A DNA stretch of 64,000 nt from Macrostomum hystrix (Eukaryota > Animalia > Platyhelminthes), in the NCBI GenBank assembly GCA_950097015.1, contig CATNEN010000007.1:2542001-2606000 (forward strand), read 5' to 3'. Position numbers and translations under genes: made by a program. This document shows positions 7,204-27,916 of the stretch, in pieces. The notes below the pieces were generated by a model. It saw nothing but the letters and a program-made list of their open reading frames with translations, was not told where the DNA came from and did not search any database. Within the stretch, counting starts at the first letter, position 1. Every line of letters begins with the position of its first letter.

Positions 7204-10200
7204 CTGCATCAATGTTTGCGAATCAGCTATTTAGAAAGAGAGCAATGGAGGCGCTCTAGTGACACTGCACCTGATTCTACATTAACTCTTGCCAGCTAAG
7301 CAAAGCAAGTTGACTCCTTGATTTAGTATAGAGTATGGACCATTGGGTCGATGGATGGACCACGATGTTGGCCATCGTGAGAGGTTTGCACTGACTGGCC
7401 ATTTTGGTACCGAGCACACAAGGAAGTATATTGAACCAAGACAGCAGACCTATGAAACAACTTCCAGAATCACAAATAATCTGCATCTTCGAGACATTCA
7501 ACGATTCTCGTGGGGCGTCTGGTGGAAAAAGCACCAATATAGGCAAAAATATTCTGCTATCAAAGTTTCTTTATGTCGGCTATAACTGCTGGTTATAATG
7601 TACTAATTATATTGTTAATTGATACACTTTTGAACCAATTCGCCAAAGAGGTTTATACAGAGTAATGTCAGTTGTGCTTGTCACCAGGGTCTTCGACAGG
7701 AATCGCTGAATATCTCGAAAATGTTTACGTCGGATTTGAAAGTTAGTCGGATTTGTAAAGAACAGAAAATTTTGATCCAGATGGTGGGCTTTCACAAAAA
7801 TCGGTCTTTGGTTTGGGGGCTATTGTGAAGTAGACAGCTCATTTAGGTATCCTTCGGGAAAATTTTAGTGCCTGAGCAAGTGCTCTAGGATCAGATTATC
7901 GATGTATTTTAGAGGTTTACATTTGACGATGAGCTTTGTTTAGTTTTCAGCAGTCAGAATGGTCAAACGTTGAATTGCGCTCAGATTTCAAAGCTGGTGT
8001 TTCTGAACCCGCTTTCCTTAGCATCGGGAACTCTTCTAGCTCGTACAACTAGGTGAACGGAGAGACACACTCCGCCATGGCTCCTTTATACTCATTGCTG
8101 GTTAGCATACCATCGTTCAATTCGGGTGCCGAGGACCACATAGTAGCGTAGTTCTCGCCGCCACCACTGTTGTCTGGCTGCCAGAAGCTCCAAAGTCGAC
8201 TATCAATGCTGGAATTGCAGCTCACCCAGTACCAGCCTCCGGCTGGCTCAGCGCTGCCCGGCAGCTGCGTGCCCCCGAGTAGTGCGCTAAGCGAGTCGAT
8301 GCGAGCCAGTATGCCTCTGATGTGAGCCAGCTCAGCTGAGTCCGTGACGTCAGCCATGGTTGTGAGGCCTGGCAGTGAGTCGATTGAAGTCTTGGCTAGG
8401 TTCCAGTTCTTGAGATCCGAGTACAGCTTGTACTTGGTGCCGCAGAAGTCGTCAGCGAACCCGGCAGGACACAGAGTTCCGGCCGGCAGTCCCGACTGCT
8501 GCTTCACAAACACCTGCTTGATGCGAGTGCAGCTGCAGTCTCTCACGTACTTGCTGCACCTGTTGAACACGAACAGCTGGCACGGACCGTCGGCCACGCT
8601 GAATGCCTGGCAGTCAGTTGTTCCATCGCACAGACTAGCGCACTCCAGGTCAGATCTCGAGCTTAAGCGAGTCACTATGAACTGGGGCCTGAGACACAGC
8701 AGCCCAGGGACTTCATTGAAGATATTCGAATAGGCCAGCAGAGCTTTCGTCAGATAAACTACGATTACCAATGCCTTAGCAACCATTTTTTTGTATCTTG
8801 GTTGTGTTGTCTGACCGGACGCGAGCGCGATTAAGGTGTAAAATTTTACTGACGTGAAGCTTTTTAAGAGCTTAGTTTAACTGCTAAAGGTAGTAAAAGT
8901 CCCAAGTGACCTGAGCTTGGCTGTTTGCTTTTAAGGCTCAGGTAAATCTTCAGAGTGAGCTGTGAAGAATTGCAGTGCCGATGTGTCCGATGAATCTACA
9001 AGTCAACTATGCCAGCTGTCTGGATTACATCAACTGGACACCCACGCCTTGAAATCACGATTCTAGAAATTTCTCTTCTACGAGCTAAAAGCATCCACAG
9101 CGGATACCCCAAAGCTCCTAAAAGGAGTAAAGCCCTGATAGATTGAAGCCCATTAACAATGAAAACGCCTTTCAAATTTGCAAAAATGTCTGAAACGTAA
9201 TGGCAAGGTGAATCTGTCAGATCTCAGAATTTTCTCAGAATCTGTCAGATCATCAAATCAAACTCTGTTGTTTAAGCTCTGAAATCGCAGCTGTGGCTTA
9301 GAAGTAGCATGGCAGGAATTCGGAATCAGATCATAATTAGGAGAGTCACAACGAGGTGATAAGCTCACCTTGACTTCATGGCCCATCCGCTCCGGCAACG
9401 CGATGGTCGCCTCCGTCTGCACGAATCCCAAGCGAAGCAGAGCTTTAGAGAAGATCTCAAAGTCACCCTCGGAGCGCTGCGGCCGACGGCGCAGGCGTTC
9501 AGCGGTTGACGCCGGGTCAGCTTCAGCCGACTGCAGCCGGTAGAGGCCGCAGCCGAAGCCGCAGCCGAGGCGGCGATTCCGGCGGGCGGACTTCGCCGGC
9601 AGCGAGTTTGATGGCCGCTTGGAAGCCGACGGCTCGCCGTTTTCGTCGCGGCGACGCTTGTTGCCAGTTGACAGCGGCACCATCGGGACAGCGCCTAGAT
9701 GGTCGCGCTCGCTTTGAACAGTGGGCGGCGGCGGCGCCGGCTCAAAAGGCTGTCTGTCGAAGCTGTGTCGATACTTCTGACCCTTGGCCACGAAAGCGGC
9801 CATCTCTGCCAGCGAAAGGCTGGTTTGGGTGGCCGGCAGCGCCTCATCAGCGTTCAACAGGTAGAACTGGCCAGGCCGGATTGTCAGCTCCAGACTGGCC
9901 GCCAGATCGGACCGGCCAGTCGGCATGCCGGAAACCTGAGTGCAAATTATTTAGGGAGAAATTTGTTTCGCGAAGTGCAATGATGAGACGCGTTGTCAGT
10001 CAATTTTTTCGGATTTCTCACCTGCCGCATGAGCGCTTGGAACAGTCGTCTGGCAGCTGCTGAAAGCCAAAGCTCCCTGTCAGGACAGTCGGGGGGCGGG
10101 CACCTCAGGAGGCTGGCCGGCTTGAGCCGATGATCGCCTATCAAGCCCGAGACGCAGTTTAACAGGCGAAAACGGCAATCGTCAGACAGGCAACCGACTG

Positions 10201-13200
10201 CCAAGGACAAGCTGGCGCCGTCCATGAAGTAGCGACAGGCCCGCCGACGGTGGCAAGTATTTAGAAGCCAACCAGCCGCGCCGGCCATCAGGCGAACCTC
10301 GCGACGCAGCCGGGAAATCGCGGCGGCGTCGCCCTCGGCAGTGAGGCGAAGCAGCGGCGGACGCTCAGGCAACGGCACTAGGCTGACCTTGGAGCAGCCG
10401 GTGGCCGCGGCCAGTCGAGCTTCGTGGAATTCGGGCACCCTGGACAGCTCCTGGCTGAGTCGATTAGGCAGCGTCTTGGCGAAGCGAGCTCCGGTGCCGG
10501 CGCCAACGTCGGTGCCGCCGCGTAGGTCGGCCGCAGCGGCGGCAGCCAGAACGGCGACGTCCCGAGTGTAATGAAGGCGCAGCAGGGCGGCCCGCGCGCA
10601 TTTGGCTGCGTAGCGAACAGCCGCGGCCTCTATGGTAACCGTCTGGCGAGATGGAATCGGCCAGCAATAGGTCACGTGACCATCCAGACCGGCGCAGCTT
10701 CGATAGAAGCCGATGATGCGAGCTCCGAGCGCGGCTGCTGCGTCGGCATCGGCATCGGGCAGGCAAAGCTGGTCGGTAATGATAGCGAGTTGGTTTACAA
10801 GCGACTGTCCCAGGTCTCTGGACTGTCCGAGTTGTCCTGAATTTCCGAGTGACTGAACTGAGCCAACTAGGGCGCCGGCGCCGTCGTACTCCAGGCGTAG
10901 GCAGTGCAATGCTAGCGCGTAGAACTCGGCAGTCGGCATCTTTAATTGACGCTCGCCATCCATGTCGACAGCGTCGTTCAAGTGGTCGTTGTCGGCGTCT
11001 TCGGCGGAGCGGACGATGCCGGCAGCTCGGGCCCAGTCAACCAGCAGGCGCAGCAGAGGCAGGCGGTGCGGACAGGCCGAGTACAAGCCCAGCAGGTAGT
11101 CGGTCTTCTCTAAGCCGATCGTGTTCATGCTGATGTCGCAGGCCACAGAGTCGTCGCCGTCAACGGTCAGGATGCAGCGAATAAGCGGGACTCTGTGAGT
11201 CAGCAGGTCCTCCTTGGCTGTGGCCACTTTGTCCAGCGCCGGAGACACAGCGTTGCGCAGCCAATGTCGGTGGAGATCCGGATCGGGCAGTGCAGCCAGC
11301 TCTGGCGTTGGCGGCGAGGACAATTTTACGCACAGATCGACATCCGAGCCGACGGCGTCGCACAGAAAGACCGAGGCGGAGCCGTAGACGGCAACCCTCA
11401 GGCTATCGCTAAAGTCGGCAATCGCAGTGGACACCAGAGCAGCGGCGCTATCGGCTCTGCCGACTGCCTCAGTCAGGGCCGGCAGCGACTCGCGCAGGCT
11501 GGCCAGGGCGGAGTGACCAACGTCCAGTCGAAGATTTCTCTCCGCGTTCGGCGCTCCAAAGGTGGTAATGGAGAGCTGTTGAGCGATGTCGCAGAGAATG
11601 TCGGCCATCACCCATGGGAAGCTCAGGCCCAGCGGCAAGCGGCTGCGGCTGTCAGAGTCGTCAAGACCGGCTGCGTCGTCGAGGTCGATGTCGCCATCTG
11701 CGTTGGATTCCTTTCGAGCGGCGCCGGCAGAAGCCAGGTACCAGGCGGCGGCCTTGGCACGCCGCTTGTTGACAATGTCTCCTCCGGCCAGGCTCGGATC
11801 GGAATCGAACTCGCGACGATATCTTTAAAATTGTTTTTATGTGGGATTATTCGATTTCCTTTCACGGATAAAATAAGGAAAATGTGATGGGGAGAAAGCA
11901 AGAATATAACGAATGGGTCACAAAGAAGTGCGTTTCACTTCTGAAACTTGTGACCTTGTCCTTAAAGCTGGTTACCGTTCACTGCGACCATAATTTAATA
12001 TTTGCAGGAGGATTGCGGGGCAATGGCACGCAAAAAATGTGACACTAGACCCACAGCCAACGAGGAGGCAATTCTTCCCATTTCGCTGACTCCTGAGCAC
12101 ACACGCTCACAGATACCGTACACAGGCACACGCTCATACAGGGGTGTAAATCTGCCCAGGCTTTCTCATCGTCAGGCAGTGTACACTCTCACTGTGACTT
12201 CGAGGTTGTCCCTCAAGGGCCTAAATTCCACGACAAGCCCGCAAGCCTTCTCTCCGCGGCTGCGCCCCAAATAAATGTGGCCTCGCTGCGGAATCGAGCT
12301 CAGGACCTTAATAATAATAATAATTGCAGGAGGGCTGCGGGCAATGACACATAGTTTGGTGACACTAGACCCGCAGCCAGCGAGGAGGCAATTCTGCCCA
12401 TTTCGCTGACTCCTGAGCACACACGCACACAGATACCGTACGCAGGCATACGCTCACACAGGTGTGTACATCTGCCCTGACTTCCTCATCGTCAGGCAGT
12501 GTTCACTTCACTGTGCCTTGGAGGTTGGCCCTCAAGGGCGTGAATTGCACGACAAGCCCCCAAGCCTTCTCTCCGCGGCTGCGCCCCAAATAAATGTGGC
12601 CTCGCCGTGGAATCGAACTTAGGGACCGTGGTGCGAGTGGCAAACGCGTTAACCGCTCTGCCACCGACCCCCCTGCTCAGGACCTTGGTGCGAGGGGCAA
12701 ACGCGTTAGACCACTCTGCCACTCAACAACCCCTTTGACTATGATTTTGTTACCATTCTGTGCGACTGTTTTGTGCGCCCCTGTGTGACCGTGTTACAAT
12801 GGATAACGGGATATAAGTTCGTCGGCGAAATATTCTACCCAGGCTTTCAATGCCATGTCTTCTTTAGCCATAGTCAGCAAAAACATTGGTCACGAAACGG
12901 TAACAGGTGACAGTGACGGTGACAGCCCCTTTTTGTGACCATTCTGTCTTATACGGAAAAGTGAGTACTTCACAGCCCACCCCTCCCCTTGGTGACGCAC
13001 CTGGCAACCAAGGCGTCCCTGGCTCCCCTGAGGCTCCGCTGCGCCGCGCCCAGATCAGAGCGCAGCGTCGAGTGCCAGCGCATGCAGCGGGTCAGCAGCA
13101 GCTCGCGCTCGCTGGCGAGGCCCCACTGGCCCAGCAGCGCCCGCAGGTCCAGCCTGTAGCGGCCCAGTTCAATGCGCGCCTTCTCGGCGAAGGCCTCCCA

Positions 13201-16200
13201 GCCAGGCCAGGTCAGGACCCGCCTGCCACAGGCGTCAGCTAGGGTGCTGGTCGGCGGGGCGGTGGCCTGCTCCAGAAGGTCCCAGTCCATCGCGTAGGTG
13301 CGACAGCGGCGGTAGAGATGGCCAAGGAGCTTCTGGGACTGGTAGGTCTGGTGCTGCGGCTTCTCCATGAAGTCCGGGTAACCAAAATCATTAACCGCCT
13401 TACGTGCATCCACCGGAACCTGATGGGGAGTAACAGAACCATTAGCCGACTTCAAGTGTGAGTTACTATTAGTAGTGTCAATGATAGAGCATTTGACACA
13501 ATACATCCAGAGCATGCACAAGTGATTCAGAAAACACGGGGCACGCTTTGCAACACCCCGAAACCACATAACACACCCAGATCCCACATAACACACACAG
13601 ATCCCACATAACACACACAGATCCCACATAACACACCCAGATCCCACATAACACACACAGATCCCATATAACGCACCCAGATCCCACATAACACACCCAG
13701 ATCCCACATAACACACACAGATCCCACATAACACACCCAGATCCCACATAACACACCCAGATCCCACATAACACACACAGATCCCATATAACGCACCCAG
13801 ATCCCACATAACACACCCAGATCCCACATAACACACACAGATCCCATATAACGCACTCAGAAGCCACATAACGCACCCAGATCCCACATAACGCACCCAG
13901 ATCCCACATAACGCACCCAGATCCCACATAACACACCCAGATCCGATATAACACACCCAGATCCCACATAACGCACCCAGATCCCACATAACGCACCCAG
14001 ATCCCACATAACACACCCAGATCCCATATAACGCACTCAGAAGCCACATAACGCACCCAGATCCCACATAACGCACCCAGATCCCACATAACGCACCCAG
14101 ATCCCACATAACACACCCAGATCCGATATAACACACCCAGATCCCACATAACACACCCAGATCCGACATAACACACCCAGATCCGACATAACACACCCAG
14201 ATCCGACATATCACACCCAGATCCCACATAACACACCCAGATCCCACATAACCCACCCAGATCCGACATAACACGCCCAGATCCGACAGTACACACCCAG
14301 ATCCGACATAACACACCCAGATCCCACATAACGCACCCAGATCCAACATAACACACCCAGATCCCACATAGCACACCCAGATCCCACATAGCACACCCAG
14401 ATCCCACATAACACACCCAGATCCCACATAACACACCCAGATCCCACATAACACACACAGAACATGCATGACCCACCTTTGGCACAATGCCAGTCTTTGG
14501 AAAGTCGACAGCCACAGACTGGGACTCGGCCAGTTTCCTGGCCAGCGGGTCGATTGCACCTTGAACCATCTGGTCGCACAGAGCCAGGTGCATGTGAGCA
14601 ACCCGGCCCAAGAAGGTGTTCTCCAGATTGGCCAAGTAGAAGTCAGCCAGCAGGTGCGGGGCGGAGACATTGGTGCCCGGCTGAGCTGTGGGCGGATTCG
14701 CAGCCAGGGCCGAGTAGTTCAATGCCGGGTGAATTGCTTGCGACGGCGGCACAAGGTTCGAGTCCCAGATGACGCTGAACTGATCACCATCGAGGTCTCC
14801 ACCGCTGCAGTCGGCGGCGAGGGATGCCTGACAGTCCGCGCGAGCTGGCATGAGCAACACGTTCACCTGCGGTGAGATTAGGATGTGGTGAAGATGAAGA
14901 TGAGATGAGGAACTCAAGCTGGGGATCTGTGTGAAATCAAGCTGGGGATCTGTGTGAACTCAAGCTGGGGATCTGTGTGAAATCAAGCTGGGGATCTGTG
15001 TGTGAACTCAAGCTGAGGATCTGTGTGAAATCAAGCTGGGGATCTGTGTGAACTCAATCTGAGCATCTGTGTGAAGTCAAGCTGAGGATCTGTGTGTGAA
15101 CTCAAGCTGAGGATCTGTGTGAACTCAAGCTGAGTATCTGTGTGAAGTCAAGCTGAGGATCTGTGTGTGAACTCAAGCTGAGGATCTGTGTGAACTCAAG
15201 CTGAGGATCTGTGTGAACTCAATCTGAGGATCAGTGAGAACTCAATCTGAGGATCTGTGAGAACTCAAGCTGGGGATCTGTGTGAAATCAATCTGAGGAT
15301 CTGTGTGAACTCAATCTGAGGATCAGTGAGAACTCAATCTGAGGATCTGTGTGAACTCAAGCTGAGTATCTGTGTGAACTCAAGCTGAGTATCTGTGTGA
15401 ACTCAAGCTGAGGATCTGTGTGTGAACTCAAGCTGAGGATCTGTGTGAACTCAAGCTGAGGATCTGTGTGAACTCAATCTGAGGATCAGTGAGAACTCAA
15501 TCTGAGGATCTGTGAGAACTCAAGCTGGGGATCTGTGTGAAATCAAGCTGGGGATCTGTGTGAACTCAATCTGAGGATCTGTGAGAACTCAATCTGAGGA
15601 TCTGTGAGAACTCAATCTGAGGATCTGTGAGAACTCAAGCTGGGGATCTGTGAGAACTCAAGCTGGGGATCTGTGTGAACTCAAGCTGAGGATCTGTGTG
15701 AACTCAATCTGAGGATCTGTGAGAACTCAATCTGAGGATCTGTGAGAACTCAAGCTGGGGATCTGTGAGAACTCAATCTGAGGATCTGTGAGAACTCAAG
15801 CTGGGGATCTGTGAGAACTCAAGCTGAGGACCCGAGGGCAGTCTCTACTCTCACCCATTTCGATAAGCCCGGCTTCTCCTGATCAGTCACAGCCCTGGCG
15901 ACACGCAAGTCGCCCGGATGCAGGCAGGGGTTGCGGTAGATGAGCACACGACCTTGCACCGTTTGCAACACGCCGTCATCCTCGCGGCAAATCTGGAATG
16001 AAAGTAGAAAATATCCCTAGAAGACGAAGGATTAATGAAAAAATATATACCAACAAATATACCAAAATCTAATAAAAAATCTGCTTTGAGTCGAATCCCA
16101 AATTGAGGCTGCTCACCCGCAGGTAGACCTCTCCCTCTGCCAGCAGGCCGGTGGGATCCGCAGCTCCCATGACCCGGCAACCCTCGGCCACCGGCAGGGC

Positions 16201-19200
16201 GGCGCGGCTGCGCAGGTCGGTGACGCGAAATTGGAAGGCCAGCCGCAGCAGGGAGCGCCAGTGCGGCTCGGAGGCCAGGTCGAAATTGGCCGCCACGCGG
16301 TTCACCAGGTGCGGTTCGATGTACTCCTGGGTTGGGTCACATTCAACTAACAACCAGTCAATGCTGTCTATTAATCAGTTCATACAGCCTAGCAACCATT
16401 TAATCCCGTCTAGCAATCAGTTGATACAGCCTAGTAACCATCATTTTATGTTGCCTAGCAACCAGTTCATACAGCCTAGCAACCATTTAATGCTGCCTAG
16501 CAACCGTTTCATGATGCTTAGAAAAGATTTCATGAGCAACCAGGTGATGCTGCCTAGAAATCAGTCCGTGCTGCATAGCAACCAGTTCGAACCTGCAAAG
16601 CCCGACTGGCGGCGTCCCCTCCAGCTAGGGATTCGGACGCCCGAGTCAGCGCCGCCTCCTGCAGCTCGAGCAGCCAGGATCGCAGATCCCACTGGCTGGA
16701 GCCTGGCCCAATCGCGCGAAGGCTGAGCGACTCCAGCAGGGTGATGGCCTCGCGGTTCAGACAGACTGACAGGGCGCGGGCCGGCTGCACCACACACAGC
16801 TGGATGTCAGTTTCAGATCGAAACTTCTCCATCGAGGGCCGCAGTAGGATGTCGATATCCTCGCTGAGGGACGTGGGAAATCGAGGACTAAAGGCTGAGA
16901 CTGTGGAGCTAGGGCTTCGTGAAGTGGGGATCAGAAATTAAGTAATGCTTACAGCAATAATACATGAAGGATCTGGGGAAAAGTTTTAGAATATTGTTTT
17001 GGAATTCGGACGAATCTTTGGTCTATTTGGGTTTCTGGAATAATATCTAATCAATTTGAGGATTAGGGAAAATCTAATTTGGCATAGTCAAAAATGTGGA
17101 CCTGGGATTTTTTTAGCATTTTTATCAGCATGTCATGCGGCGCCTCACCCAAATGCCGATCGGAACTCCGGATCATCCTCGGGATCCACCACAACTAGGA
17201 CGCCTTTGGCTCCGCCGTAGCGGAACTGATAGGCCGATGGAGACCGCGAAATGTCCAACTGATGAGCGATCTGCTCAGCCAGCCGCCGGCTAATCTTGCC
17301 GCAGCCTGCTCCAATTGCGGGTTGGGGGGTTCCAGCTTTGCAATTTCATTTTAGACAGGGAGCAGTTCACTGAGAATGGTCTCACCGTCTGTCAGTAGAT
17401 CGCCGTTGGCAGCTCGCCGGTCGTCTACGCGACCGGTACGCCAGGCTGGCAGGTCCACGATGGGCTGGTCGCCTGTGTGGAACAGGGCCAGCCTGGCCAG
17501 GTACTTCGGCACCGAATTGTAGTCGAGTGGGCTGCCAACCAGACTGTGGCGCATCTCCGCAATGACCTCCTTGGCAATGTCGAACACAAGTCAAGTGTGA
17601 TCATGTGCATTTGGCTTGCACTCGTGATCACTACTAAAGAAATGACATTGCAAAGTGGACAGGAACATCTTCCCATAATTTCTACCCGCAGCTGATGCTG
17701 GGACCCATTGCTTTTAACAGTAGAATATTTAAAATCCCCTGGGGAAACAATTCCCACTGGCCTACTGCCTACGATAGCTCCCAAACCAAATGACCAGTTT
17801 TCGTGAAATTCTACCATTTGGATCAAAGTTTTCCACCGAAACTCAAGAACAGGGGTCAAATTTTTGTTGCGCATCTTCTGAAAAAAGAAACAAGTCGCCA
17901 GCTCTTCAGACCGTCGAGATATTCAATTTTTCTGGCCGAAGGTCCGATTTTTCCATAAGAGCTAGTGTATTTCATACACCCCTATACACGAATTTGCACT
18001 GCGCCTCAGTGCGGCCTTGCCAGGCCTTCAAAATTTATCAGCATGTCACCCGAGTGTGCCTGCACCATCTCCGTCTTCGGTGGTCACCTACCTTTATCTA
18101 GACGGAGCAGCTGGACCTTTAACAAGTAATAGTTGAGTTTAGGCCAATATCGAGGCTTTATTAGAGAAAGTAGAAAAATTCGCTTTAGGGACTTCATTGC
18201 CAGCTGGAGGCACCCTGCTGACGGTGCTGACGGCGTCGGGGTGGTGACTGATTGGTTGACGGACTAGAGGAGCATGTAAAGTAGTTGAGTGTTGCCCAAT
18301 GTCGAGGCTTGATCAGCGAAAGTAGAGAAATTCGCTTTAGGGACTCCATAGTTGGCTGGTGCCACTTGTTGAAGGTCCAGCAGCTCCGTCTAGATAAAGG
18401 TCGGTGACCGCCGAAGTCGGAGATGATGCAAGCACATTCGGGTGACATGCTGATAAAGTTTGAAGGTCCCCCCTTGTTAGTTCTACTTTTACGAGTAGAA
18501 CTGTGGCACTCGTAAGGGCACATTTTGCTTCTGCGTTTAGATTCGAACCACGGGACCACCTCATTTGATTCGGCATCAAAAAAAGTGACAGTGCTGAAGA
18601 TTTATCTAATTTTTATCTAATTTCTCGAAGCTAAATTTCTTTAAATCTTCCAGCCGTGAGCTTCTATAGAAAATTACTTTTGACATATAGTTTAGTTTGC
18701 TTTGCATTGTTTATGTATTTTTTCCCACAAAACGGCCCTTTTAGGTCTGATTTGAATAATTGCGTACTAACAATAGTAGTCTGCAGTGCAGTTGACATTT
18801 CTAATTAAAAACAGCTGACACTTTTAATAGAAAGTTTATGCGCGGCCTCACCTGATCATGGACGTCGACAAACATGCAGCGCTGACTGCGCAGCTGACTG
18901 CCGCTTGCCGATAAAAATCGAAACCGCCTGCCAGCCAGGACCAGGCCGTCGATAAGGATTTGGCGAAATCGGTGTCTGTCGCTTTTGGACAGATTTCGAA
19001 TCGAGTTGCCCGCCTCGTCAGTGAAGGACAGCAGCAGGAAGCGCCTACCCAAGGGTGCCCACCTTCGCAGCAGCCTGGAAGAGGCCACGGGCACGGGTGT
19101 TTGACAGACAAGCCGGCTGGGTGTCGCGCTGGCGCGCAGCACACTCACGGTGCCGGGCGGTTGCACCGGCTGCAGTAGGTCAATATTGTCCTGCGGCAGG

Positions 19201-22200
19201 TGCTTCAGCAGGTGCCTGCAGGTCTCCAGTCTGGCCGCTGGATCGGCTAAGAAGGCTGGCAGCGACATCAACTGCTTGAGGCCGACAGACATCTTCAGCA
19301 GACTGGCCAGGTCCGCCGCGTCCAGGTGTTGCGCAATGTCCCTGAGGGTTGGCTGAACAAACACAGCCTCGCAGAGCCGAAATCGGCGAGCGTCAAGAAG
19401 GCATCTCAACAGCCAGCGGCTGTTAAAGGCGGCGGCATCGAGATCGGCTTCGTTCGAGCACCGCGGCCGACTCGGAGTTGGCGGAGCGTCGATGTCATCG
19501 TAGGAGGTCGCATTCTGTCTCGCACCTGACGACGCCTCGACGTCCGGATGCAGCAGCGTCAAGTGAGTCTCCAGCAGCGGCAGCGGAAAGTGTCGGCGTA
19601 TCCTCAGCCAGCCGGCTGCAGGCGAGCGGGTGAGGGGTGGGTGCAAGAGTTTAATTACGCCCTTAAGGGTCAACCTCTATGACACAGTGAGTGCAAACTG
19701 TCTGCGTACGATATCTATTTGCGTGTGTGCTCAGGAGTCAGCGGAATGGGCAGAATTGCCTCTCAATTTGTGTCAAATATTTCAGGTTAGTGAGCTCAGC
19801 AACACAAACGGAGCCAGAGTGAGCTCAGCAACACACACGGAGTCAGAGTGAGCTCAGCAACACAAACGGAGCCAGAGTGAGCTCAGCAACACAAACGGAG
19901 CCAGAGTGAGCTCAGCAACACAAACGGAGCCAGAGTGAGCTCAGCAACACAAACGGAGCCAGAGTGAGCTCAGCAACACAAACGGAGCCAGAGTGAGCTC
20001 AGCAACACACACGGAGTCAGAGTGAGCTAAGCAACACAAACGGAGCCAGAGTGAGCTCAGCAACATACTCGGAGTCATAGTGAGCTCAGCAACACACACG
20101 GAGTCATAGTGAGCTCAGCAACACACACAAAGTCATAGTGAGCTCAGCAATACACACGGAGTCAGAGTGAGCTCAGCAACACACACGGAGTCAGAGTGAG
20201 CTCAGGTACATACACGGAGTTAGAAGTCGTTCGTGCAAGCGCAGCAGCAGCAGCTGACACTCGGCCTGAGCTGCCAGGAACTGTCTATAAGCTTCCATCA
20301 GCAGCTGATCTTCCTCATCCTCATCATCATCATCATCCTCATCCTCATCATCATCATCATCATCGGGCAGCTGTACATCCGGGCAGAACCGCATGGGCAC
20401 CGCCAGCCAGCCCAGCTGCCAGTCGACCAGCGCCAGGCCGTTCGTGCCTGGTGTAGCCAGCCAGATCTTCAGCTTGCCGCCGAACAGCTCCAGCACCAGA
20501 GCCCGGCTGGCCGAATCCTGCGTCCCGGCCAGTTTGCAGCGCAACTGTGGCTCGCCGCAATTAAACTCTTGCACAATGCTGAGCTCTAATTCGCGCTGAA
20601 ATCTGCCAACAGCAAAGCCGGACATTGGCAGCAGGATTTCGTCCACCGAGGAGCTGTTGGAAGAATCGAGCGCCGCTTCGGGCACCAGGGGCAGAGTATA
20701 GACTGGAACGCCGCCGTGCCGGAAGCTCCACCGGCGACAGAATCGCCACCAGCGCAGCAGCGGAAGGTTGCCGACGCCGCCGCCCCCGCCGCCGCCCCCG
20801 CCGTCGATGCAGGCGACCACAACCGAAGTGCTGGCAGGAAACACTCCGGCGATGCCGGCGGTGGCCGAGCCGGCGGAAGTGAACTGGTCCACCCGGCTCA
20901 CCCGAAAGCAGCAAGGCGCCTCTTCAAGACTTTTCAGCAGCTTTTTGAGACCGCTGTCGCGCAGGTCAACAAACAGGCGGAGTACCAGGTGGCGACTGCT
21001 GAACGACCAGATTGACGAAGCTGGGGCGGCATTCGACTGATCGCCGCTACTGCCACCGTCGTCTGGATCATCTTCATCGTCGCTCTATGAAATTTGGTAA
21101 GCGAATGGGAAGGTACCCTTAACAGTAGAAAGACCAGACCACGGGGGTATGTGCCGGTGGTTTTTGCCACCAGACAATCCGCCGAGAATCGTTAAATATC
21201 TCAACGATACCGATGTTTCTTGATCCTGGAAGTTGTTTCATCGGATAGAGTGGAAAGTTTTAGCCTGTGTTCTGGATTTTCATGGCGATCGGTTGAATAT
21301 TTTGGGAGATACAGAAAAAAAGTTGGCGTTTTGAAATATCCACCCGGTCTTTCTTCTGATAAAGACGCATCAAGGGGTGCTGTTTGTAATTTGAGCCGTT
21401 TTGAATAAGCGACTCGAAGCTACGCGTCTCGACCGACGCTACAACGAGTCGAAAAACGATCGCTTGGGAGTTTGAGTCTTAAACCTGCGATTTTATCTGG
21501 ATAAACAGCGGAACAAACTCACCAGAGCCTGAGTCAGCTGCTGCACAATGGCCACAGTGGCCGGGCAGGGTCCGCCAGCTTCCATGGACTCGCGGCTGAG
21601 CAGGGCGTCCAGAGCCGCCTCCCTTAGGCGCAGTCGGGCAGCGGCGGCGCGCTCGTCGGCGTCGGCCACCACCACGAAGCGGCTGCCGGGTCGGCGAGCG
21701 CGGCCGCGACTCTGCACCAGCTGGATGAGGGAGCGGGCAGCGTCGAAGCGAATCACGACGTCGCACTCGCCGACATCGAGGCCCTCCTCCAGCACTGAGG
21801 TGCTCACCATCAGGCGACTGACGCCAGAGTTGAACCTGTCCAGCACCAGCTCCTGTTCCTCCTCCCAGCGCATGCCGTCCGGACCACCCTGCATGGCAGC
21901 AGCGTGAGGGAGGCGTCATACAGCTTGCCCCCCTGACCACAATGCGTTTCTCTGACCCCAAGGTATCACTCTGACTGCAATTTGTCACTCTGACTGCAAT
22001 TTGTCACTCTGACCACAATGTGTCACTCTGACCCCAATGTGTCACTCTGACCACAATGTGTCACTCTGACCCCAATGTGTCACTCTGACTGCAATTTGTC
22101 ACTCTGACCACAATGTGTCACTCTGACCCCAATGTGTCACTCTGACTGCAATTTGTCATTCTAACCACAATGTGTCACTCTGACCGCAGAGTGTCTATGA

Positions 22201-25200
22201 GACCGGCTACCTGTTTCTGACCCCAAATACATGTTTCTGACCCCAATACCTGTATATGACTACAGTACCGATCTGTGACCCCCAATCCATCACTCACCTG
22301 TCCAATGCACAGCTGAGGTCGGAGGCCCTGAAACTGCTTGTCGGCCAGGCCTTCGCTGACAAGCATTCTGGCGGTTCTCCTGGTGCTGGCAAACACAAGC
22401 GCCCTCGACTTGTCGCCCAAACGTCGCAGCTCGTTGTGCAAAGCTGTCAGCCGCTGGCTGATGTCCGTCTGCCAGCCTGCGGCTTGACGAGACGCCAGCC
22501 AGCCAGACAGCAGCTTGGCAAGGTTCGGCAGCTCCCGCTGCAGCAGCGTCACAGCGAAGCTCAGGCCAAGAGTGCGGGCGATGTCAATCTGGGATAATTG
22601 GGAGAGCACATGCAACCTAACTTTATTCCCATTCTCCTGTATCACATATTTTTATGCGATTAGCACATCCCAGACTATCGAATCCCATTCTGACACGTCA
22701 CAGACTCCTAAATCCCACTTTTAAAAATCCAAAAATCTAAAAATCCGATTCCTACTCATCTCATACATTTGGAGATCCCACTCTCAGGCAAGCCATACAG
22801 TGAGATCTCATTCTGAGGCATCCCATGCAGTGAGATCCCATTCCTAGGCAACCCATACAGTGAGATCCCATTCTGAGGCAACCCATGCAGTGAGATCTCA
22901 TTCTGAGGCAACCCATACAGTGAGATCCCATTCTGAGGCAACCCATGCAGTGAGATCTCATTCTGAGGCATCCCATGCAGTGAGATCCCATTCTGAGGCA
23001 ACCTATGCAGTGAGATCCCATTCTGAGGCATCCCATGCAGTGAGATCCCATTATTAGGCAACCCATACAGTGAGATCCCATTCTTAGGCAACCCATACAG
23101 TGAGACCCCATTCGCACGCACCACGTCCATCAGCGCCATCAGCTCCCTGAGCCGGTCGGCAGTAGGTCCGTAGCCGCTGTGCAGCGGACTAGACTTCAGC
23201 GCTCTCAGGTGTCCCAGCACATACCCGAAGCTCCTAATCATTGCCGGTGTGTCCGCCAGCCAGGCACCGAGTCCGCCACCACCCGCTCGGATGTCTATGG
23301 CGCTTAAACGATCAACTAGCAGCCGCCTAGCCTCGTCCAGGAAGTTTTCCAGCACAGCCGATCGCGCCACCGGAACCTCCAGCACCGTGGGCGTCTGGGC
23401 CCTGGCCTCAGCCGGCCGAAATATCCCAGTGCCCGGCGGGAACCTGGCCAAGTAGCGCCTCAGCCGCTCCTCCCCGCTGTCAATGTCGCGCAGCTCGATT
23501 GGAGAGGCCGTCAGACCAAGGAGGCGAGGGCGGGCGCTGTCGGGCAGCAGGTTCAGCAAATCCAGCACCTTACAGGCGAGAAACAGGCAGGATTTAGTGT
23601 GACCTTCTGACTTTGTTCAGCTCATTGACTCCCACAGTCTATCAGCTGCAGTCCCACAGTCTATCAGCTGCAGTCCCACAGTCTATCAGCTGCAGTCCCA
23701 CAGTCTATCAGCTGCAGTCCCACAGTCTATCAGCTGCAGTCCCACAGTCTATCAGCTGCAGTCCCACAGTCTATCAGCTGCAGTCCCACAGTCTATCAGC
23801 TGCAGTCCCACAGTCTATCAGCTGCAGTCCCACAGTCTATCAGCTGCAGTCCCACAGTCTATCAGCTGCAGTCCCACAGTCTATCAGCTGCAGTCCCACT
23901 GCCCAACTGCTAAATGTGCAGCACCAGTGAGAAGTTGTGCCCGCCAGTGCCAGCGTGGTGACACTCGTCCAGCACGATGCAGGAGAAGGCCGTGAGGTCC
24001 ATGTCCCGCTTTTCCCGCACTCGGGACAACAGAAGGCCGGCGGTGGCCACAAGTAGGTCGTGAGAGCCTTCGCGAAGTCGACGAACGCTTATGTCCGTGG
24101 CATTTTCACCGCACAGGGCCGCGACACGTAGGCCTGTGTCAGACTGAGGCAGGTAGGTGAGTGGAGAATCAGAATCTAGTGCCAGCCAATCAGAATCTAG
24201 TGCCAGCCAATCAGAATCTAGTGCCAGCCAATCAGAATATAGTGACAACGAATCAATCGTGCCAGCCAATCAGCCAATGATTCAGTGACAGGCAAACAGA
24301 ACTAGAGACAGCCAATCAGAACCAGAGACAGCTAATCAGAACCCAGAGACAGCTAATCAGGATACAGTGACAGCCAATCATACCATAGTGACAGCTAGAA
24401 CCCAGTGACGCCTCCTCACCTCTAGCGACCTGGCCTGCTGGAACACCAAAGGCACCCGTTCAACCAGCAGGACGCCCATGAGGTGCGGGTTGAGGCGCCG
24501 CATTCGGGCTAGCAGGAGGGCGGCAACAAGGGTCTTGCCCGAGCCCGTAGGCATCACCAGAACCAGATCGCGTTGAAGTGCTTCAGCAAAGGCCTCCAAT
24601 TGGTAGCGTCGGGGCTGGCGCCTGTGCCGGTGTCGGCAACGCTGCCGGTTGCCACTGAAGTCATCGTCGGTCAGCAGTAGGTCGCGCCATTCAAAATCGC
24701 CTGGCCGATCGATGCTGGCGAACTTAATAGGACCAGCTCCGCCGACCGCTACTGGCTGGGCAGCTGACTCGGCTGCGCCTGATTGGACGCTGCAGGAACA
24801 TAGGACAATTGCGCAGTTTGAAGCGGATAGATCGAGTGGACAGTGAGGAGGTGGGGGATAAAGGAAAAGGAGCGGAGAAAAGGATGGAGCGGAGAGGAAG
24901 GTGGAGAGGAAGGTGGAGCGGAGAGGAAGATGGAGAGGAAGGTGGAGTGGAGAGGAAGGTGGAGCGGAGAAGAAGGTGGAGAGGAGAGGAAGGTGGAGCG
25001 GAGAGGAAGGTGGAGAGGAGAGGAAGGTGGAGAAGAGAAAAAGGTGGAGAGGAGAGGAAGGTGGAGCGGAGAGGAAGGTGGAGAGGAGAGGAAGGTGGAG
25101 CGGAGAGGAAGGTGGAGAGGAGAGGGAGGTGGAGGTGGAGAGGAAGGTGGAGCGGAGAGGAAGGTGGAGAGGAGATGAAGGTGGAGCGGAGAGGAAGGTG

Positions 25201-25816
25201 GAGAGGAGAGGAAGGTGGAGAGGAGAGGGAGGTGGAGAGGAGAGGGAGGTGGTGGTGGAGAGGAAGGTGGAGCGGAGAGGAAGGTGGAGAGGAGAAGAAG
25301 GTGGAGCGGTGAGGAAGGTGGAGCGGAGATCATTAAATAGATAGATCAGAAGACATTTCTCATTTGATTGACATGTTGTGCATCTCTGATATAATGGGCT
25401 GCATTGATTAGAATGCCAAAAATAAAACAAAAATTTTTGTAATCCACTGACTTGTGAGCAAAGAACTGCTGGGTATCGCGCCTTTCAATCTCCATCAGTC
25501 GGTTGACAAGTTGGTGAGGCTTTTCCTTGCGACCGAATCGCTTCCCTAGCAGAACAATTTTGTCCAGGCCGAATGCGACAAAGCTGACCCCATTGGGCCC
25601 ATATGGAAGCTCTTTGCCAAGAACAGCTTTGCACACAGCGCAGACAACATTCTGAACGCCACGTTTATCGCCTGCCTCAGAGTGAAGACCATTGCGTGCA
25701 AACACGAGTTCCCTGAGCTCTGGCTTCAGTGCCAAGTGGGTAGAATTGGATTGAAAGAAGAACAGTTCCCGCAGTTCTACTAATTGAGCCCCACACCTGG
25801 GATTACCACATTGCAT
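6601..25816 (-). CDS. Multidomain RNA-silencing protein: RLR-CTD-like Zn domain + DExH helicase + RNA-dependent RNA polymerase + Cid1/TUTase-like nucleotidyltransferase + C-terminal unknown domains
   Basis: Exons: 25816-25452, 24789-24420, 24143-23925, 23568-23122, 22588-22298, 21888-21523, 21084-20214, 19615-18852, 17569-17386, 17305-17149, 16863-16593, 16326-16117, 15992-15855, 14866-14477, 13419-13001, 11822-10022, 9935-9369 (or read-through to the stop at 9258), and 7203-6601. All junctions are GT-AG with matching phase. Total 8433 nt (2810 aa), or 7941 nt (2646 aa) for the short form. Confidence 0.85.
8049..8786 (-). CDS. Secreted PAN/apple domain + C-type lectin protein, intronless, 245 aa
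   Basis: Hydrophobic N-terminus ([18 protein letters not shown]), PAN-type CASLC...DCQAFSV...CQL, then CTLD features [20 protein letters not shown] and a terminal EC. Confidence 0.8.
   Translation of the reverse strand: MVAKALVIVVYLTKALLAYSNIFNEVPGLLCLRPQFIVTRLSSRSDLECASLCDGTTDCQAFSVADGPCQLFVFNRCSKYVRDCSCTRIKQVFVKQQSGLPAGTLCPAGFADDFCGTKYKLYSDLKNWNLAKTSIDSLPGLTTMADVTDSAELAHIRGILARIDSLSALLGGTQLPGSAEPAGGWYWVSCNSSIDSRLWSFWQPDNSGGGENYATMWSSAPELNDGMLTSNEYKGAMAECVSPFT
9947..11822 (-). CDS. Exon encoding the RdRP C-terminus plus a Pol-beta-superfamily nucleotidyltransferase (Cid1/TUTase/TRF4-like)
   Basis: RdRP tail RAKAAAWY, then [18 protein letters not shown] (GS..DxD at 11336-11383), third Asp in ACDISMN (11135-11137), [14 protein letters not shown] and a FYALALHCL helix. 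The coding exon ends at the donor 10022/10021. Confidence 0.85.
11991..12725 (-). mobile_element. Tandem tRNA-derived SINEs: one 5'-truncated copy, one full copy and a duplicated head
   Basis: A-box-like GTGGCAGAGCGGTT, B-box-like AGTTCGATTCC and an (ATT)n tail. The same body recurs at 29875, 38790, 40292 and 42880. Confidence 0.85.
13001..19615 (-). CDS. Eukaryotic (QDE-1/RDR/RRF-type) RNA-dependent RNA polymerase domain, exons 8-15
   Basis: Motifs [64 protein letters not shown], catalytic SGGDLDGD (DLDGD at 14783-14797), [15 protein letters not shown] and LGHLYR. Confidence 0.97.
13560..14460. repeat. 20-bp intronic tandem repeat (CAGATCCCACATAACACACC)
   Basis: Visible array filling the RdRP intron 13420-14476. 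Confidence 0.95.
14905..15830. repeat. ~23-bp intronic tandem repeat (GAACTCAAGCTGAGGATCTGTGT)
   Basis: Visible array filling the RdRP intron 14867-15854. Confidence 0.95.
18024..18466. repeat. Inverted repeat with ~103-bp arms (18024-18127 and 18364-18466) in an RdRP intron
   Basis: Arms compared by eye show about 9 mismatches. A degenerate single copy lies near 35168-35250. Confidence 0.9.
19790..20205. repeat. ~29-bp tandem repeat (GAGTGAGCTCAGCAACACAAACGGAGCCA) abutting an exon donor
   Basis: Visible array in intron 19616-20213. Confidence 0.9.
21523..24789 (-). CDS. RIG-I/Dicer-type SF2 DExH helicase domain, exons 2-6
   Basis: Q motif PRRYQLE, Walker A MPTGSGKT (24531-24554), Ia PLVFQQ, DECHH (DECH at 23958-23969), [30 protein letters not shown] and VI QSRGRAR. 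Confidence 0.95.
21940..25330. repeat. Five separate intronic minisatellites in the helicase region
   Basis: 21940-22180 (TGTCACTCTGACCACAATG), 22770-23110 (30-bp GTGAGATCCCATTCTGAGGCAACCCATGCA), 23630-23900 (CAGTCCCACAGTCTATCAGCTG), 24165-24390 (GCCAATCAGAA-based) and 24850-25330 (GGAAGGTGGAGAGGAGA-type). Confidence 0.9.
25452..25816 (-). CDS. First coding exon: Zn-binding domain resembling the RIG-I-like receptor C-terminal domain (Yippee/Mis18 fold)
   Basis: MQCGNPRC...THLAL...[16 protein letters not shown]...FVAF follows the CxxC..H..CxxC..G..Y spacing of the RLR CTD. The ATG has GCC context and an in-frame upstream TAG. Confidence 0.65.
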
Positions 25817-27029
25817 GGCTTCAGCTTTTGGCTAGGAGTGATTGTTGGCACAGATTTCCCTGAAAAAAAGATTTGCTTATTTTATTACAAAAAAAGTTTT
25901 TTTCGTTGTATCAGAAATTAAATATTCATTATTAACTATTTTAGCATTATAAGACTCTATATTGTGCGGGAAATATATAGAGAATTTACCAGCTTGCAAA
26001 AAATAACTCCTTTACTGGAGCAAGTGAGAAAAGCTATTTTTATTTTGTTTGTTTCAAGTTTAAATAAGCTCGAAAAAAAATTAACAAATCGCGGCAAAGG
26101 TGAGACGACAGGAGCGCGGGGGCTTAAAACGAGCCGGGCAGCCAGCCACCCCACGCCCCCCCGCCTCCAGAGTACATGCACGCATGCACAAAGTGCCACC
26201 CCCGGTGTGTCTAACACACCTTACTCAGAGAGTAACGAACGCATTAGACTAGTTGAGTTAGCAGCCAGTTAGCTGTATAGTCGGGTATATCTATTAAGAC
26301 TATATTCCAAAATACATCTGTACAATTAGGGACGAGTAATTTTTTGTTATTACTTAAACTAAAAAAAATTATAGATATACTTAATTCATTTTACTTTAAC
26401 TATTTGGTTTTTAATAAAAATGAACAATCAATTTAACAGCTTAATTTTATAAACAGTAAAGATTCAATGGTTCCACATGACCTTGTAATGCTAAGTAATT
26501 TCTAAAGATCTAATCATGAGCATCAATGTGAAAATTAATATCACTGAAAAAACTTCCTTTTTAAACAAAATTTTAGTCTGATAATAACTCTGGGGATTCT
26601 GAAATGTAGCAGAAAAACCTACAACTGTAAGACATTTAAATCAGACTAATTATTCCCAATTACAATATTTAGTGACCAAAACTTTCTACACTCTAAAAAA
26701 ACAAGATAAGTTGTTTATAAACTTAACTTAGCATTACATCTATACATTTTACTATTTCAAATCATCTCCTGTGGCCACTTATAAATAGCACTGTTACTAC
26801 TTTGATTAACTTATTTCACTAATGAGTATAACAGGTTTACAATACAATAATCTCAAATACTCCCATATTTCTTCACTACAGTGCTAATAATAGTCTAATT
26901 TTTTTGTTTGTGGAAAGGCTAATTTTCTTTCTTATGGTGACATAGTCAAGATGCTTTATTATAATTTATAATAAGGATTAATTCAGTTGAGCCAACTGTC
27001 GTACGGCGTCGAATTGCACTGAATTATAT

Positions 27030-27082
27030 ATATATAATATATAATATAATATAATATATAATATATATATATATATATATAT
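27030..27082. repeat. AT microsatellite in an AT-rich intergenic region
   Basis: (ATATA)n/(AT)n run. Confidence 0.9.
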
Positions 27083-27916
27083 AACGGCTAGTGTTTATCA
27101 CAACGCAAAACTTTGACAGTATACACGAGCTATAAGAACTGACTTCCCATGTGCTGAAAGGTACGAAACGAAAATTGTATCGTAGAAAATGAGATTTTCA
27201 AAAGTTTCCATTTTCGCTTTCGTGTAAAAGATTAACAAATATATTTTCTGTTTATCTAGAGAAAAAACTTTATGACTTTTTAAGAAGCTAATGCAAGATG
27301 AATTGCTAACGCCTTATGAATAGCGTTTGGTTGCTTGTTATTCAAAATAAGTTGATAAATTTACGGCCGGCCGTGAAATACATTTCCCCAATGTATATTA
27401 ATTAATTAATGCTTAATTACGAAATGAAAATATATATAAGGTTACACTGATTCCACTAGTCAGTGGTTTATTAAATTTCAGACTTTTGACTTCAGGGCTA
27501 ATGCTCGGAATGTAAGTAGTTTATTGAAAAAAAATGACACAAAATCATAATCATTACAAAATAAAAGTATTGTACATGTAAATAAAAGCTAGTAAAAGCC
27601 AGTATGTATATAAGTCTCAGTTTATGTCAGACATGTTTAATGTCTTAATTGTTATCTCAGTTAAACAAGAACAGAAAATTCAACAAAAAACATATGTAAA
27701 AAGTTTCTGTTTAATACCATCGGAATGCGACAAAGCAGATCCAGTTTGATCCGTTTGGAATATTATTACAAATAATATTAGGACTTTACAGGATTTTAAA
27801 TATTTAAATAACTTACCTTGTCGCCGCCTCACCTTCCACCAATCCTTCCACATAGGTGATTGTGAATCATGAGGTAAATTCATATGATACAGGACATGTT
27901 GATTCACCCAACTCAC

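Follow-up and report, generated by a model that had tools for sequence, protein, structure and literature searches.

A putative zinc-knuckle domain of predicted RLR-CTD-like fold heads a helicase-RNA polymerase-nucleotidyltransferase protein in the flatworm Macrostomum hystrix

The C-terminal domains (CTDs) of RLRs let animal cells distinguish foreign RNA ends from their own, and to our knowledge they are regarded as specific to animals and as invariably placed after the helicase. In a stretch of the Macrostomum hystrix genome (64,000 nucleotides, hereafter the window), an exon with a similar cysteine pattern was proposed in an earlier note to place such a domain before a helicase, which raises the questions of whether the exon is real, what fold it encodes, and what a domain in this position might do.

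Minus-strand translation of exon 1 from 25816 to 25452 gives 121 codons plus 2 bases. Two studies, with four public runs between them, provide transcript contigs that lack exactly positions 24790-25451 and join 25452 to 24789, and the ends of the removed intron, CT..AC on the plus strand, read GT..AG on the minus strand; the splice to 24789, one of the refutation tests set by the earlier note, was thus borne out. The same contigs extend through exon 2 to 24420, and exon 2 continues the reading frame of exon 1 and has a GT donor after 24420. Upstream of 25860, the genomic sequence gives way in the contigs to a 24-nt piece of the Macrostomum spliced leader (SL), and this leader matches the M. 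lignano SL (PMC5173321). Intron 1 is largely a 17-nt minisatellite (24869-25329, 27.6 copies). Exon 1 is genuine and expressed, and the features of the gene, all on the minus strand, are as follows.

25861-25860, minus strand: trans-splice acceptor AG
25817..25860, minus strand: 5' UTR of the mature mRNA, from transcript contigs, spliced leader, and polypyrimidine tract plus AG
25452..25816, minus strand: coding part of exon 1, the N-terminal zinc domain, of 121 codons plus 2 bases and predicted RLR-CTD-like beta-tent fold
25793..25810, minus strand: putative zinc knuckle 1, C3...C8, CxxxxC in the window copy and CxxC in most of the family
25631..25642, minus strand: putative zinc knuckle 2, C59-x-x-C62, followed by the invariant G67 and a P-[FY]-G-P motif
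25452..25540, minus strand: C-terminal extension of the domain, residues ~93-121, matched structurally by RLR CTDs only
24790..25451, minus strand: intron 1, 662 nt, GT..AG
24420..24789, minus strand: exon 2, a ~60-residue linker followed by helicase motifs Q and I (PTGSGKT)
21670..24146, minus strand: remaining helicase exons, Dicer/RLR-type DExH (DECH motif II, Helicase_C)
13000..19208, minus strand: exons of a cellular RNA-dependent RNA polymerase (RdRP; PF05183)
9753..11824, minus strand: exons collinear with the MTPAP-like nucleotidyltransferase part and C-terminus of the homolog P0001

The CxxxxC..H..CxxC..LG...Y motif attributed to exon 1 is present in its translation as C3-x4-C8, H27, C59-x2-C62, L66-G67, and Y72. 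To place it in a family, the domain was searched against 1.84 billion representatives at a cut-off of E<=1e-3. In total, 49 matches were obtained (best E 1.5e-14), ~40 of them true relatives; P0004, P0014, P0018, P0019, and P0039 were discarded as bacterial T9SS surface proteins that matched through repeats. A word search with residues 1-125 of P0001 added only three further close relatives. The hosts are dinoflagellates, Diplonema, a chrysophyte, a cryptophyte, Hydra, and the flatworm Macrostomum, a distribution of scattered animals and many protists that extends far outside animals.

Conservation was scored in a 38-sequence family alignment (A1), in which the four cysteines (C3, C8, C59, and C62) are conserved at 97-100% and no other cysteine is conserved; the further conserved positions are G67 (100%), P74 (97%), G73 (95%), P32 (92%), and H27 (82%). 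This four-cysteine ligand pattern suggests that the domain binds zinc, and in alignments with DRH-3 and with RLR CTDs from the same genome the four residues fall on the knuckles. The claimed RLR-CTD-like spacing held for the two knuckles, ~50 residues apart, but not at finer scale: the family consensus is CxxC...CxxC, and the CxxxxC of the window is a two-residue insertion otherwise found only in P0025, so the likeness in spacing is limited to the two-knuckle level. The C-terminal extension carries a family motif, K-x-K-W ... I-E-x-R-D ... F-F, with P instead of W in the window copy, this family residue (W100) being lost both there and in the paralog described below. The domain is basic (pI 9.46; family median 8.9), with conserved basic positions at K31 (97%), K/R52 (82%, directly before knuckle 2), K86, K97, K99, and R113 (90%).

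Residues 5-2299 of P0001 are matched collinearly by the window gene, and an intron-poor paralog on contig 32, covering P0001 residues 1-2303, holds the zinc domain and helicase motif I within one open reading frame. In the homologs P0001, P0003, and P0006, the zinc domain occupies residues 1-120 and is followed by DEAD, Helicase_C, RdRP, and MTPAP-like domains. Thus, the domain lies N-terminal to the helicase in the window gene, the paralog, and all full-length homologs, and the proposal that it stands ahead of the helicase, in reverse of the RLR order, is upheld by the in-frame splice, the one-ORF paralog, and the full-length homologs alike. Such an order could have arisen by permutation of an RLR or by an independent fusion. 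The domain opens a conserved protein of ~2,300-2,700 aa, a single chain in which the zinc domain, a linker of ~40-60 residues, a DExH helicase of the Dicer/RLR type, a cellular RdRP, and an MTPAP/Cid1-like nucleotidyltransferase follow one another. Whereas an RLR CTD is C-terminal to its helicase and joined to it via a pincer, this domain is neither, being N-terminal and attached through a plain linker.

Against the PDB, the best matches of the P0001 helicase (residues 125-720) were Dicer helicases, followed by LGP2, RIG-I, and MDA5 (AncD1D2, 1e-36; DCL1, 1e-35; Dcr-2, 1e-27; LGP2, 6e-26; RIG-I, 2e-23), and exon 2 of the window by itself matched DCL1 at 4e-8. By sequence, the adjoining helicase belongs with the Dicer/RLR duplex-RNA-activated ATPases and is nearer to Dicer than to the RLRs. 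Joint modeling of the zinc domain and helicase of P0001 as a complex scored 0.00; it was run without the alignments and counts neither way.

Sequence comparison of the zinc domain with known families gave weak and divided matches. A Pfam scan of the window domain returned no family at E<=1, and phmmer against PDB sequences gave one chance match for the window domain and nothing for the family member P0005. Among the 38 family members, Yippee-Mis18 was matched by 27 (best E 2e-5), RIG-I_C-RD by 20 (best E 1e-4), and SelR by one, with all matches below the gathering score and Yippee-Mis18 matched at least as often as RIG-I_C-RD: P0005 reached 17.8 bits against the 25.6-bit threshold of RIG-I_C-RD (PF11648), and the scores listed for Yippee/Mis18 (PF03226; threshold 26.6 bits) were 19.2 and 21.3 bits. 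A genome-wide PF11648 search found canonical RIG-I_C-RD CTDs elsewhere in the genome and neither exon 1 nor its paralog. The family profile aligned at full length with CTD chains of DRH-3, LGP2, DRH-1, and RIG-I at E 0.07-0.7, placing the family K-W motif on K-A-K-W of the DRH-3 CTD. Alignment of the family by hhalign with canonical RLR CTDs of the genome was weak (E 0.003 and 0.009, probability <=10%) and extended only to the His strand and both knuckles. Nearest neighbors by protein language model were HECT_2, Eapp_C, FAM72, and Yippee clusters, with scores <=0.81 that serve as leads only.

Structural comparison separated the candidates more clearly. A single-sequence AlphaFold model of the domain (pLDDT 39.6) was replaced by one built on the family alignment (pLDDT 95.2, pTM 0.87), in which the domain takes the saddle-shaped two-sheet fold with C-terminal strands and a helix that is characteristic of RLR CTDs. 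In an exhaustive VIA-align comparison of this predicted domain with 48,161 PDB representatives, nine RLR/DRH CTDs ranked first (Z 9.1-11.6, rmsd 2.2-3.1, 99-105 residues), with LGP2 at 11.6, MDA5 at 11.3, RIG-I at 11.0, DRH-1 at 10.1, and DRH-3 at 9.7, and their matches spanned the full length of the model, residues 1-121. MsrB, Mis18, Mss4, cereblon, and YPEL5 reached Z 5.5-7.8 over residues 1-92 only (MsrB 7.8, Mis18 7.2, YPEL5 5.8). RLR or DRH chains made up 44 of the 50 top Foldseek matches, and an ESM Atlas fold search returned generic beta-tent families only, over residues 1-91, with SelR proteins as the neighbors. The predicted model therefore agrees with the RLR-CTD-like fold that had been proposed, so that the other refutation test of the earlier note was passed as well, and it supports assignment of the domain to the beta-tent superfamily (Mss4/Yippee/MsrB/RLR-CTD), closest to the RLR and nematode DRH CTDs. 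Fold and reversed order are both supported, because structure comparison, splice, paralog, and full-length homologs bear them out.

Other readings of the exon and of the fold were weighed. That the cysteines line up by chance, in non-coding DNA or an exon called in error, might be suspected from the window domain having no direct Pfam or PDB sequence match, but this reading is refuted by the presence of the exon in spliced, SL-capped transcripts and by the paralog, in which the domain is in frame with the helicase; nor is the motif a matter of chance, because homologs reach E 1.5e-14 and the cysteines are 97-100% conserved in A1. A methionine-R-sulfoxide reductase domain of the MsrB/SelR type is disfavored as highly improbable, even though MsrB chains come first in the profile search of the PDB (E 0.035) and in Foldseek (E 8e-3), SelR proteins are the ESM Atlas fold neighbors, and the C-x-x-C-x4-G ... 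G-P segment is similar to the second MsrB knuckle. The match is limited to that knuckle or to residues 1-92, the Z of 7.8 compares with 11.6 for RLR CTDs, and the domain has no position for the catalytic Cys or Sec of PF01641, because beyond the four zinc ligands none of its cysteines is conserved.

The beta-tent domains of Mis18, YPEL5, and cereblon bind proteins or small ligands, Mis18 Yippee domains dimerize, and YPEL5 docks on an E3 ligase. A generic Yippee/Mis18-type module that serves protein-protein contacts or oligomerization of a large enzyme, with no RNA binding, is accordingly conceivable here but unlikely: Yippee-Mis18 is the Pfam family matched by most members (27/38, best 2e-5), the profile search of the PDB includes YPEL5 and Mis18 among its matches (E 0.05-0.4), and the language-model neighbors (HECT_2, Eapp_C, FAM72, and Yippee clusters) point the same way, whereas Mis18, YPEL5, and cereblon align at Z 5.5-7.2 over residues 1-92, short of a full-length fold match, against 9.1-11.6 over 121 residues for RLR CTDs, and the domain is basic and always fused beside a duplex-RNA helicase. 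The RIG-I CTD was itself once ascribed a "repressor domain" role, and on that model the main task of the fold could be to regulate helicase and polymerase within the same molecule, with no end-specific recognition of RNA. We regard this as improbable; it shares the fold evidence with the RNA-binding reading and fits the fact that no conserved triphosphate-pocket residues were mapped, but nothing positive points to it.

The reading we prefer, and consider probable, is that this four-cysteine RLR-CTD-like domain at the head of a helicase-RdRP-nucleotidyltransferase protein is RNA-binding, probably at an RNA terminus. An RLR CTD caps the RNA end and so positions its helicase. Similarly, the basic N-terminal domain would bind RNA, probably at a duplex or single-strand terminus, and once bound it could position the neighboring duplex-RNA-activated helicase on the template or product of the RdRP. 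A precedent is DRH-3, an RdRP cofactor that acts with RdRPs in trans (PMC3590228) and whose CTD binds 5'-ppp RNA and RdRP products through K988, K990, K993, and R1016 (bioRxiv 10.1101/2021.03.14.433363). The loop aligned to these contacts is variable in the zinc-domain family, and a triphosphate pocket is therefore not demonstrably conserved residue by residue; both RNA binding and any 5'-ppp specificity are what we infer for the domain.

With the RLR/DRH CTDs (PF11648), the window domain has in common the four-cysteine zinc pattern with two knuckles ~50 residues apart, the saddle-shaped beta-tent with extra C-terminal strands and helix (predicted on the window side), and attachment as a basic domain to a duplex-RNA helicase of the Dicer/RLR family, and these CTDs match its structure best and are alone in doing so over the full length (Z 9.1-11.6); DRH-3 is similar also in working with an RdRP and binding its 5'-ppp products. 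In contrast to RLR CTDs, the zinc-domain family scores below the Pfam gathering score, its helicase is nearer to Dicer, and its hosts lie far outside animals. The Yippee/Mis18/cereblon-CULT/MsrB/Mss4 families (PF03226, PF01641) have the core fold and both zinc knuckles in common with the domain, the second of which is MsrB-like, but they match residues 1-92 only, and the domain is without the MsrB catalytic cysteine; we know of no fusion of these families to a helicase or RdRP.

Multi-subunit RdRP complexes offer a second comparison. The S. pombe RDRC consists of Rdp1, the helicase Hrr1, and the nucleotidyltransferase Cid12, and in C. elegans the RdRP RRF-1 forms a complex with DRH-3 (PMC3590228), as does EGO-1. 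These complexes unite the same three enzymatic activities, and those of nematodes also an RLR-type CTD, whereas the window protein has all modules on one polypeptide, with the CTD-like domain first. Dictyostelium RrpA, RrpB, and RrpC likewise combine helicase and cellular RdRP in one protein (PMC3661229), and none of the three was among the 49 domain-search matches at E<=1e-3. A literature search with a minority of the subscription journals in its scope yielded no account of helicase-RdRP proteins that carry an RLR-CTD-like domain at the N-terminus, which is no proof of novelty; helicases are not mentioned in Pinzon et al. (2019).

A stronger version of the preferred reading holds that the N-terminal domain is a true homolog of the RLR/DRH CTD, as its sister or ancestor, that its pairing with a Dicer-type helicase dates back to the ancestor shared by alveolates, stramenopiles, cryptophytes, euglenozoans, and animals, and that it reads the 5'-triphosphate of the RdRP product or of viral RNA. 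We hold this to be quite unlikely. If true, animal RLRs would have inherited an ancient module of end sensor plus duplex helicase from the RNAi amplification machinery, and reading of the 5'-triphosphate would link RNA synthesis to unwinding and 3' tailing within a single polypeptide.

The family, whose conservation spans dinoflagellates, diplonemids, Hydra, and flatworms, represents a domain group beyond the reach of current Pfam models at their thresholds, and for biochemical and structural work it offers an RdRP complex modeled compactly on a single chain. Macrostomum is a transgenic, RNAi-amenable flatworm, and the function of the domain is therefore testable in vivo. The pairing of an end sensor with a duplex helicase may predate animals and be tied to RNAi amplification.

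The window was taken from contig 7 of a 220-Mb eukaryotic assembly, and its gene is set out below with a paralog from the same genome.

25816 (ATG) to 25452, minus strand: coding part of exon 1 (121 codons plus two bases), the zinc domain
Exon 2, minus strand: ~60-residue linker and helicase motifs Q and I
Later exons, minus strand: DECH, Helicase_C, then RdRP
G000:C32:32402-40023, minus strand: contig 32 paralog with zinc domain, helicase, RdRP, and nucleotidyltransferase (loci L002 and L009)

The CxxxxC..H..CxxC..LG...Y spacing described in an earlier note is present in the translated exon 1 peptide, at C3-x4-C8, H27, C59-x2-C62, L66-G67, and P71-Y72-G73-P74. Transcript contigs from four public runs (two studies) were aligned to window positions 24200-27200, and the 24789-25452 junction occurred in at least one contig of every run (4/4), with 662 bases skipped; the ends of the skipped segment are CT..AC on the plus strand, equal to GT..AG on the gene strand, confirming the splice from exon 1 to 24789. 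Contigs of three runs traversed exon 2 to 24420, which is directly followed by a GT donor, and then diverged from the genome again. On the 5′ side, divergence began at 25860, right after a polypyrimidine tract and AG, and the next 24 nt perfectly match the trans-spliced leader of Macrostomum lignano in its 3′ part (PMC5173321). The spliced junction and the leader show that the contigs derive from mRNA, that no exon precedes exon 1 in the mature transcript, and that the organism is a Macrostomum-type flatworm. The reading frame is kept across the 24789|25452 junction into the helicase. No intron-less DNA copy was found in the assembly, the sole other genome match being a 30%-identical paralog.

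The terminal AUG of the spliced leader begins a 13-codon upstream ORF (window 25817-25861, minus strand) that stops at a TGA four bases 5′ of the main ATG (25816). Intron 1 consists almost wholly of a 17-nt minisatellite (window 24869-25329) with 27.6 copies at 85% matches; its plus strand is rich in purines, and it gives rise to long spurious ORFs on both strands. Between 25499 and 25841, the contigs showed five or six differences from the window in exon 1 and the UTR, three of them common to organisms A and B; this ~98.5% identity indicates that the source of the RNA was a different strain or a species very closely related.

The window gene was searched exon by exon, and its architecture rests on exon-wise matches, collinearity with the full-length homolog P0001, and the paralog. 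By tBLASTn, residues 5 (25798) through 2299 (9753) of P0001 (2,318 aa) aligned to the window in collinear order. P0001 and two other full-length homologs, P0003 and P0006, share a Pfam layout in which a 120-residue N-terminus with no Pfam assignment precedes DEAD/ResIII (~160-325), Helicase_C (~480-610), RdRP (~1040-1720), and an MTPAP-like nucleotidyltransferase (~1780-2030). Three long blocks of the contig 32 paralog, which is nearly intron-free (~7.6 kb vs. ~16 kb for the window gene), span P0001 residues 1-2303; a single unbroken ORF contains the zinc domain together with the linker and helicase motif I of this paralog, and thus the domain order is independent of any splice model. The in-frame splice, the one-ORF paralog, and the layout of the three homologs together bear out the earlier placement of the zinc domain ahead of the helicase, an order that is reversed relative to RIG-I-like receptors (RLRs). 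Compared with PDB sequences, the helicase matched Dicer helicases best (AncD1D2, 1e-36; DCL1, 1e-35; DCL4; Dcr-2), followed by LGP2 (6e-26), Hef, RIG-I (2e-23), MDA5, and FANCM, and exon 2 alone matched DCL1 (4e-8); this ranking places it among the Dicer/RLR-clade duplex-RNA-activated ATPases, somewhat closer to Dicer. Directly after a helicase exon, an open frame at window 22756-23120 (minus strand) holds ~12 tandem 10-residue units, N-G-I-S-L-[YH]-G-[LM]-P-x, and this 30-nt repeat either belongs to an intron or encodes an insertion within the helicase insertion domain; a further repeat lies at 23613-23930.

HMMER, run in full over 1.84 billion representatives, recovered 49 proteins at E ≤ 1e-3, with E ≤ 1e-10 for six. 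Members of the family come from the dinoflagellates Prorocentrum, Polarella, and Effrenium, Diplonema papillatum, Hydra vulgaris, an ochromonad chrysophyte, and the cryptophyte Rhodomonas. Family proteins are named “uncharacterized” or “RNA-directed RNA polymerase” in public databases. Five matches (P0004, P0014, P0018, P0019, and P0039) were discarded as Bacteroidota-type T9SS repeat proteins with multi-stretch matches; such T9SS-sorted surface proteins match domain residues ~62-90 with E-values down to 1e-11, a repeat-driven false-positive trap. In the 38-sequence family alignment, the four cysteines were conserved at 97-100%, alongside V-H-L, K-P-E, G67, P-F-G-P-x-G, F-x-A-F-G-x-D-K-V, K-x-K-W, and I-E-x-R-D...F-F. 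The first knuckle is CxxC in most members, and the window CxxxxC reflects a two-residue insertion common to one other match, P0025. The contig 32 paralog has CxxC at both knuckles and only ~27-30% zinc-domain identity to the window copy; the family W100 is absent from both.

Judged by sequence, the family belongs to the beta-tent superfamily without falling into any curated family. Pfam scans of the aligned members matched Yippee-Mis18 in 27 of 38 (best 2e-5) and RIG-I_C-RD, the RLR C-terminal domain (CTD), in 20 of 38 (best 1e-4), with printed scores below the curated cut-offs, and the window copy had no Pfam match. The family profile gave only marginal matches to PDB sequences (E 0.035-0.7): MsrB chains at the second knuckle only, YPEL5 at positions 2-74, Mis18 at 2-85, and the DRH-3 CTD, LGP2, DRH-1, and the RIG-I CTD across nearly the whole profile, with the family K-W falling on the K-A-K-W of DRH-3. 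AlphaFold2 with the alignment yielded a model with pLDDT 95.2 and pTM 0.87 (pLDDT 39.6 from the single sequence). For this predicted structure, RLR or nematode Dicer-related helicase (DRH) chains made up 44 of the 50 best Foldseek matches in the PDB (TM 0.47-0.61), and RLR or DRH CTDs took the first nine places by VIA-align against 48,161 PDB representatives (Z: LGP2 11.6, MDA5 11.3, RIG-I 11.0, DRH-1 10.1, DRH-3 9.7; rmsd 2.2-3.1 over 99-105 residues, model range 1-121). MsrB1 (7.8), Mis18 (7.2), Mss4 (6.2), cereblon (6.2), and YPEL5 (5.8) followed, over residues 1-92 only. The most conserved family motif lies within the last 30 residues, which in the model have a structural counterpart in RLR CTDs only. 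The predicted fold thus supports the RLR-CTD-like domain that had been suggested for exon 1. The main rival to RNA binding by the domain, a Yippee/Mis18-style protein-interaction role, is improbable.

Canonical RIG-I_C-RD domains, scoring 62 and 45 bits, also occur elsewhere in this genome, where two of four loci exceed the Pfam cut-off, one is weak, and one has three stop codons.

G000:C7:8483571-8483903: RIG-I_C-RD locus L003
G000:C11:1999628-1999909: RIG-I_C-RD locus L004
L005 and L006: further RIG-I_C-RD loci

With both present, the N-terminal zinc domain is an addition to, not a replacement of, ordinary RLR CTDs. The reversed order could stem either from a rearranged RLR-like ancestor or from a beta-tent domain having been fused independently; an origin inside animals is unlikely because the family is widely spread among protists. 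Helicase-RdRP fusions as such are known in Dictyostelium (PMC3661229). A literature search found no paper on this N-terminal domain or on its resemblance to RLR CTDs.

RLRs clamp the duplex with their helicase and cap the RNA terminus with their CTD (PMC3590228), and the CTD of Caenorhabditis elegans DRH-3, an RdRP cofactor, prefers 5′-ppp ends, the mark of RdRP products (bioRxiv 10.1101/2021.03.14.433363). The zinc domain is basic (pI 9.46 in the window copy; family median 8.9), and its conserved basic positions include K97 and K99 of the C-terminal extension and K/R52, which lies in the loop immediately preceding knuckle 2. By analogy, RNA binding by the zinc domain is somewhat favored. Specific recognition of 5′-ppp is improbable; the DRH-3 5′-ppp contact lysines map onto a loop that varies in the family, so any conserved pocket would be putative. 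On the RNA-binding reading, a flexible linker would tether the RLR-CTD-matching domain to Hel1, in the same chain as the RdRP and a tailing enzyme, and in its simplest role the zinc domain may be the RNA-end or duplex-binding head of a helicase-RdRP-tailing machine.
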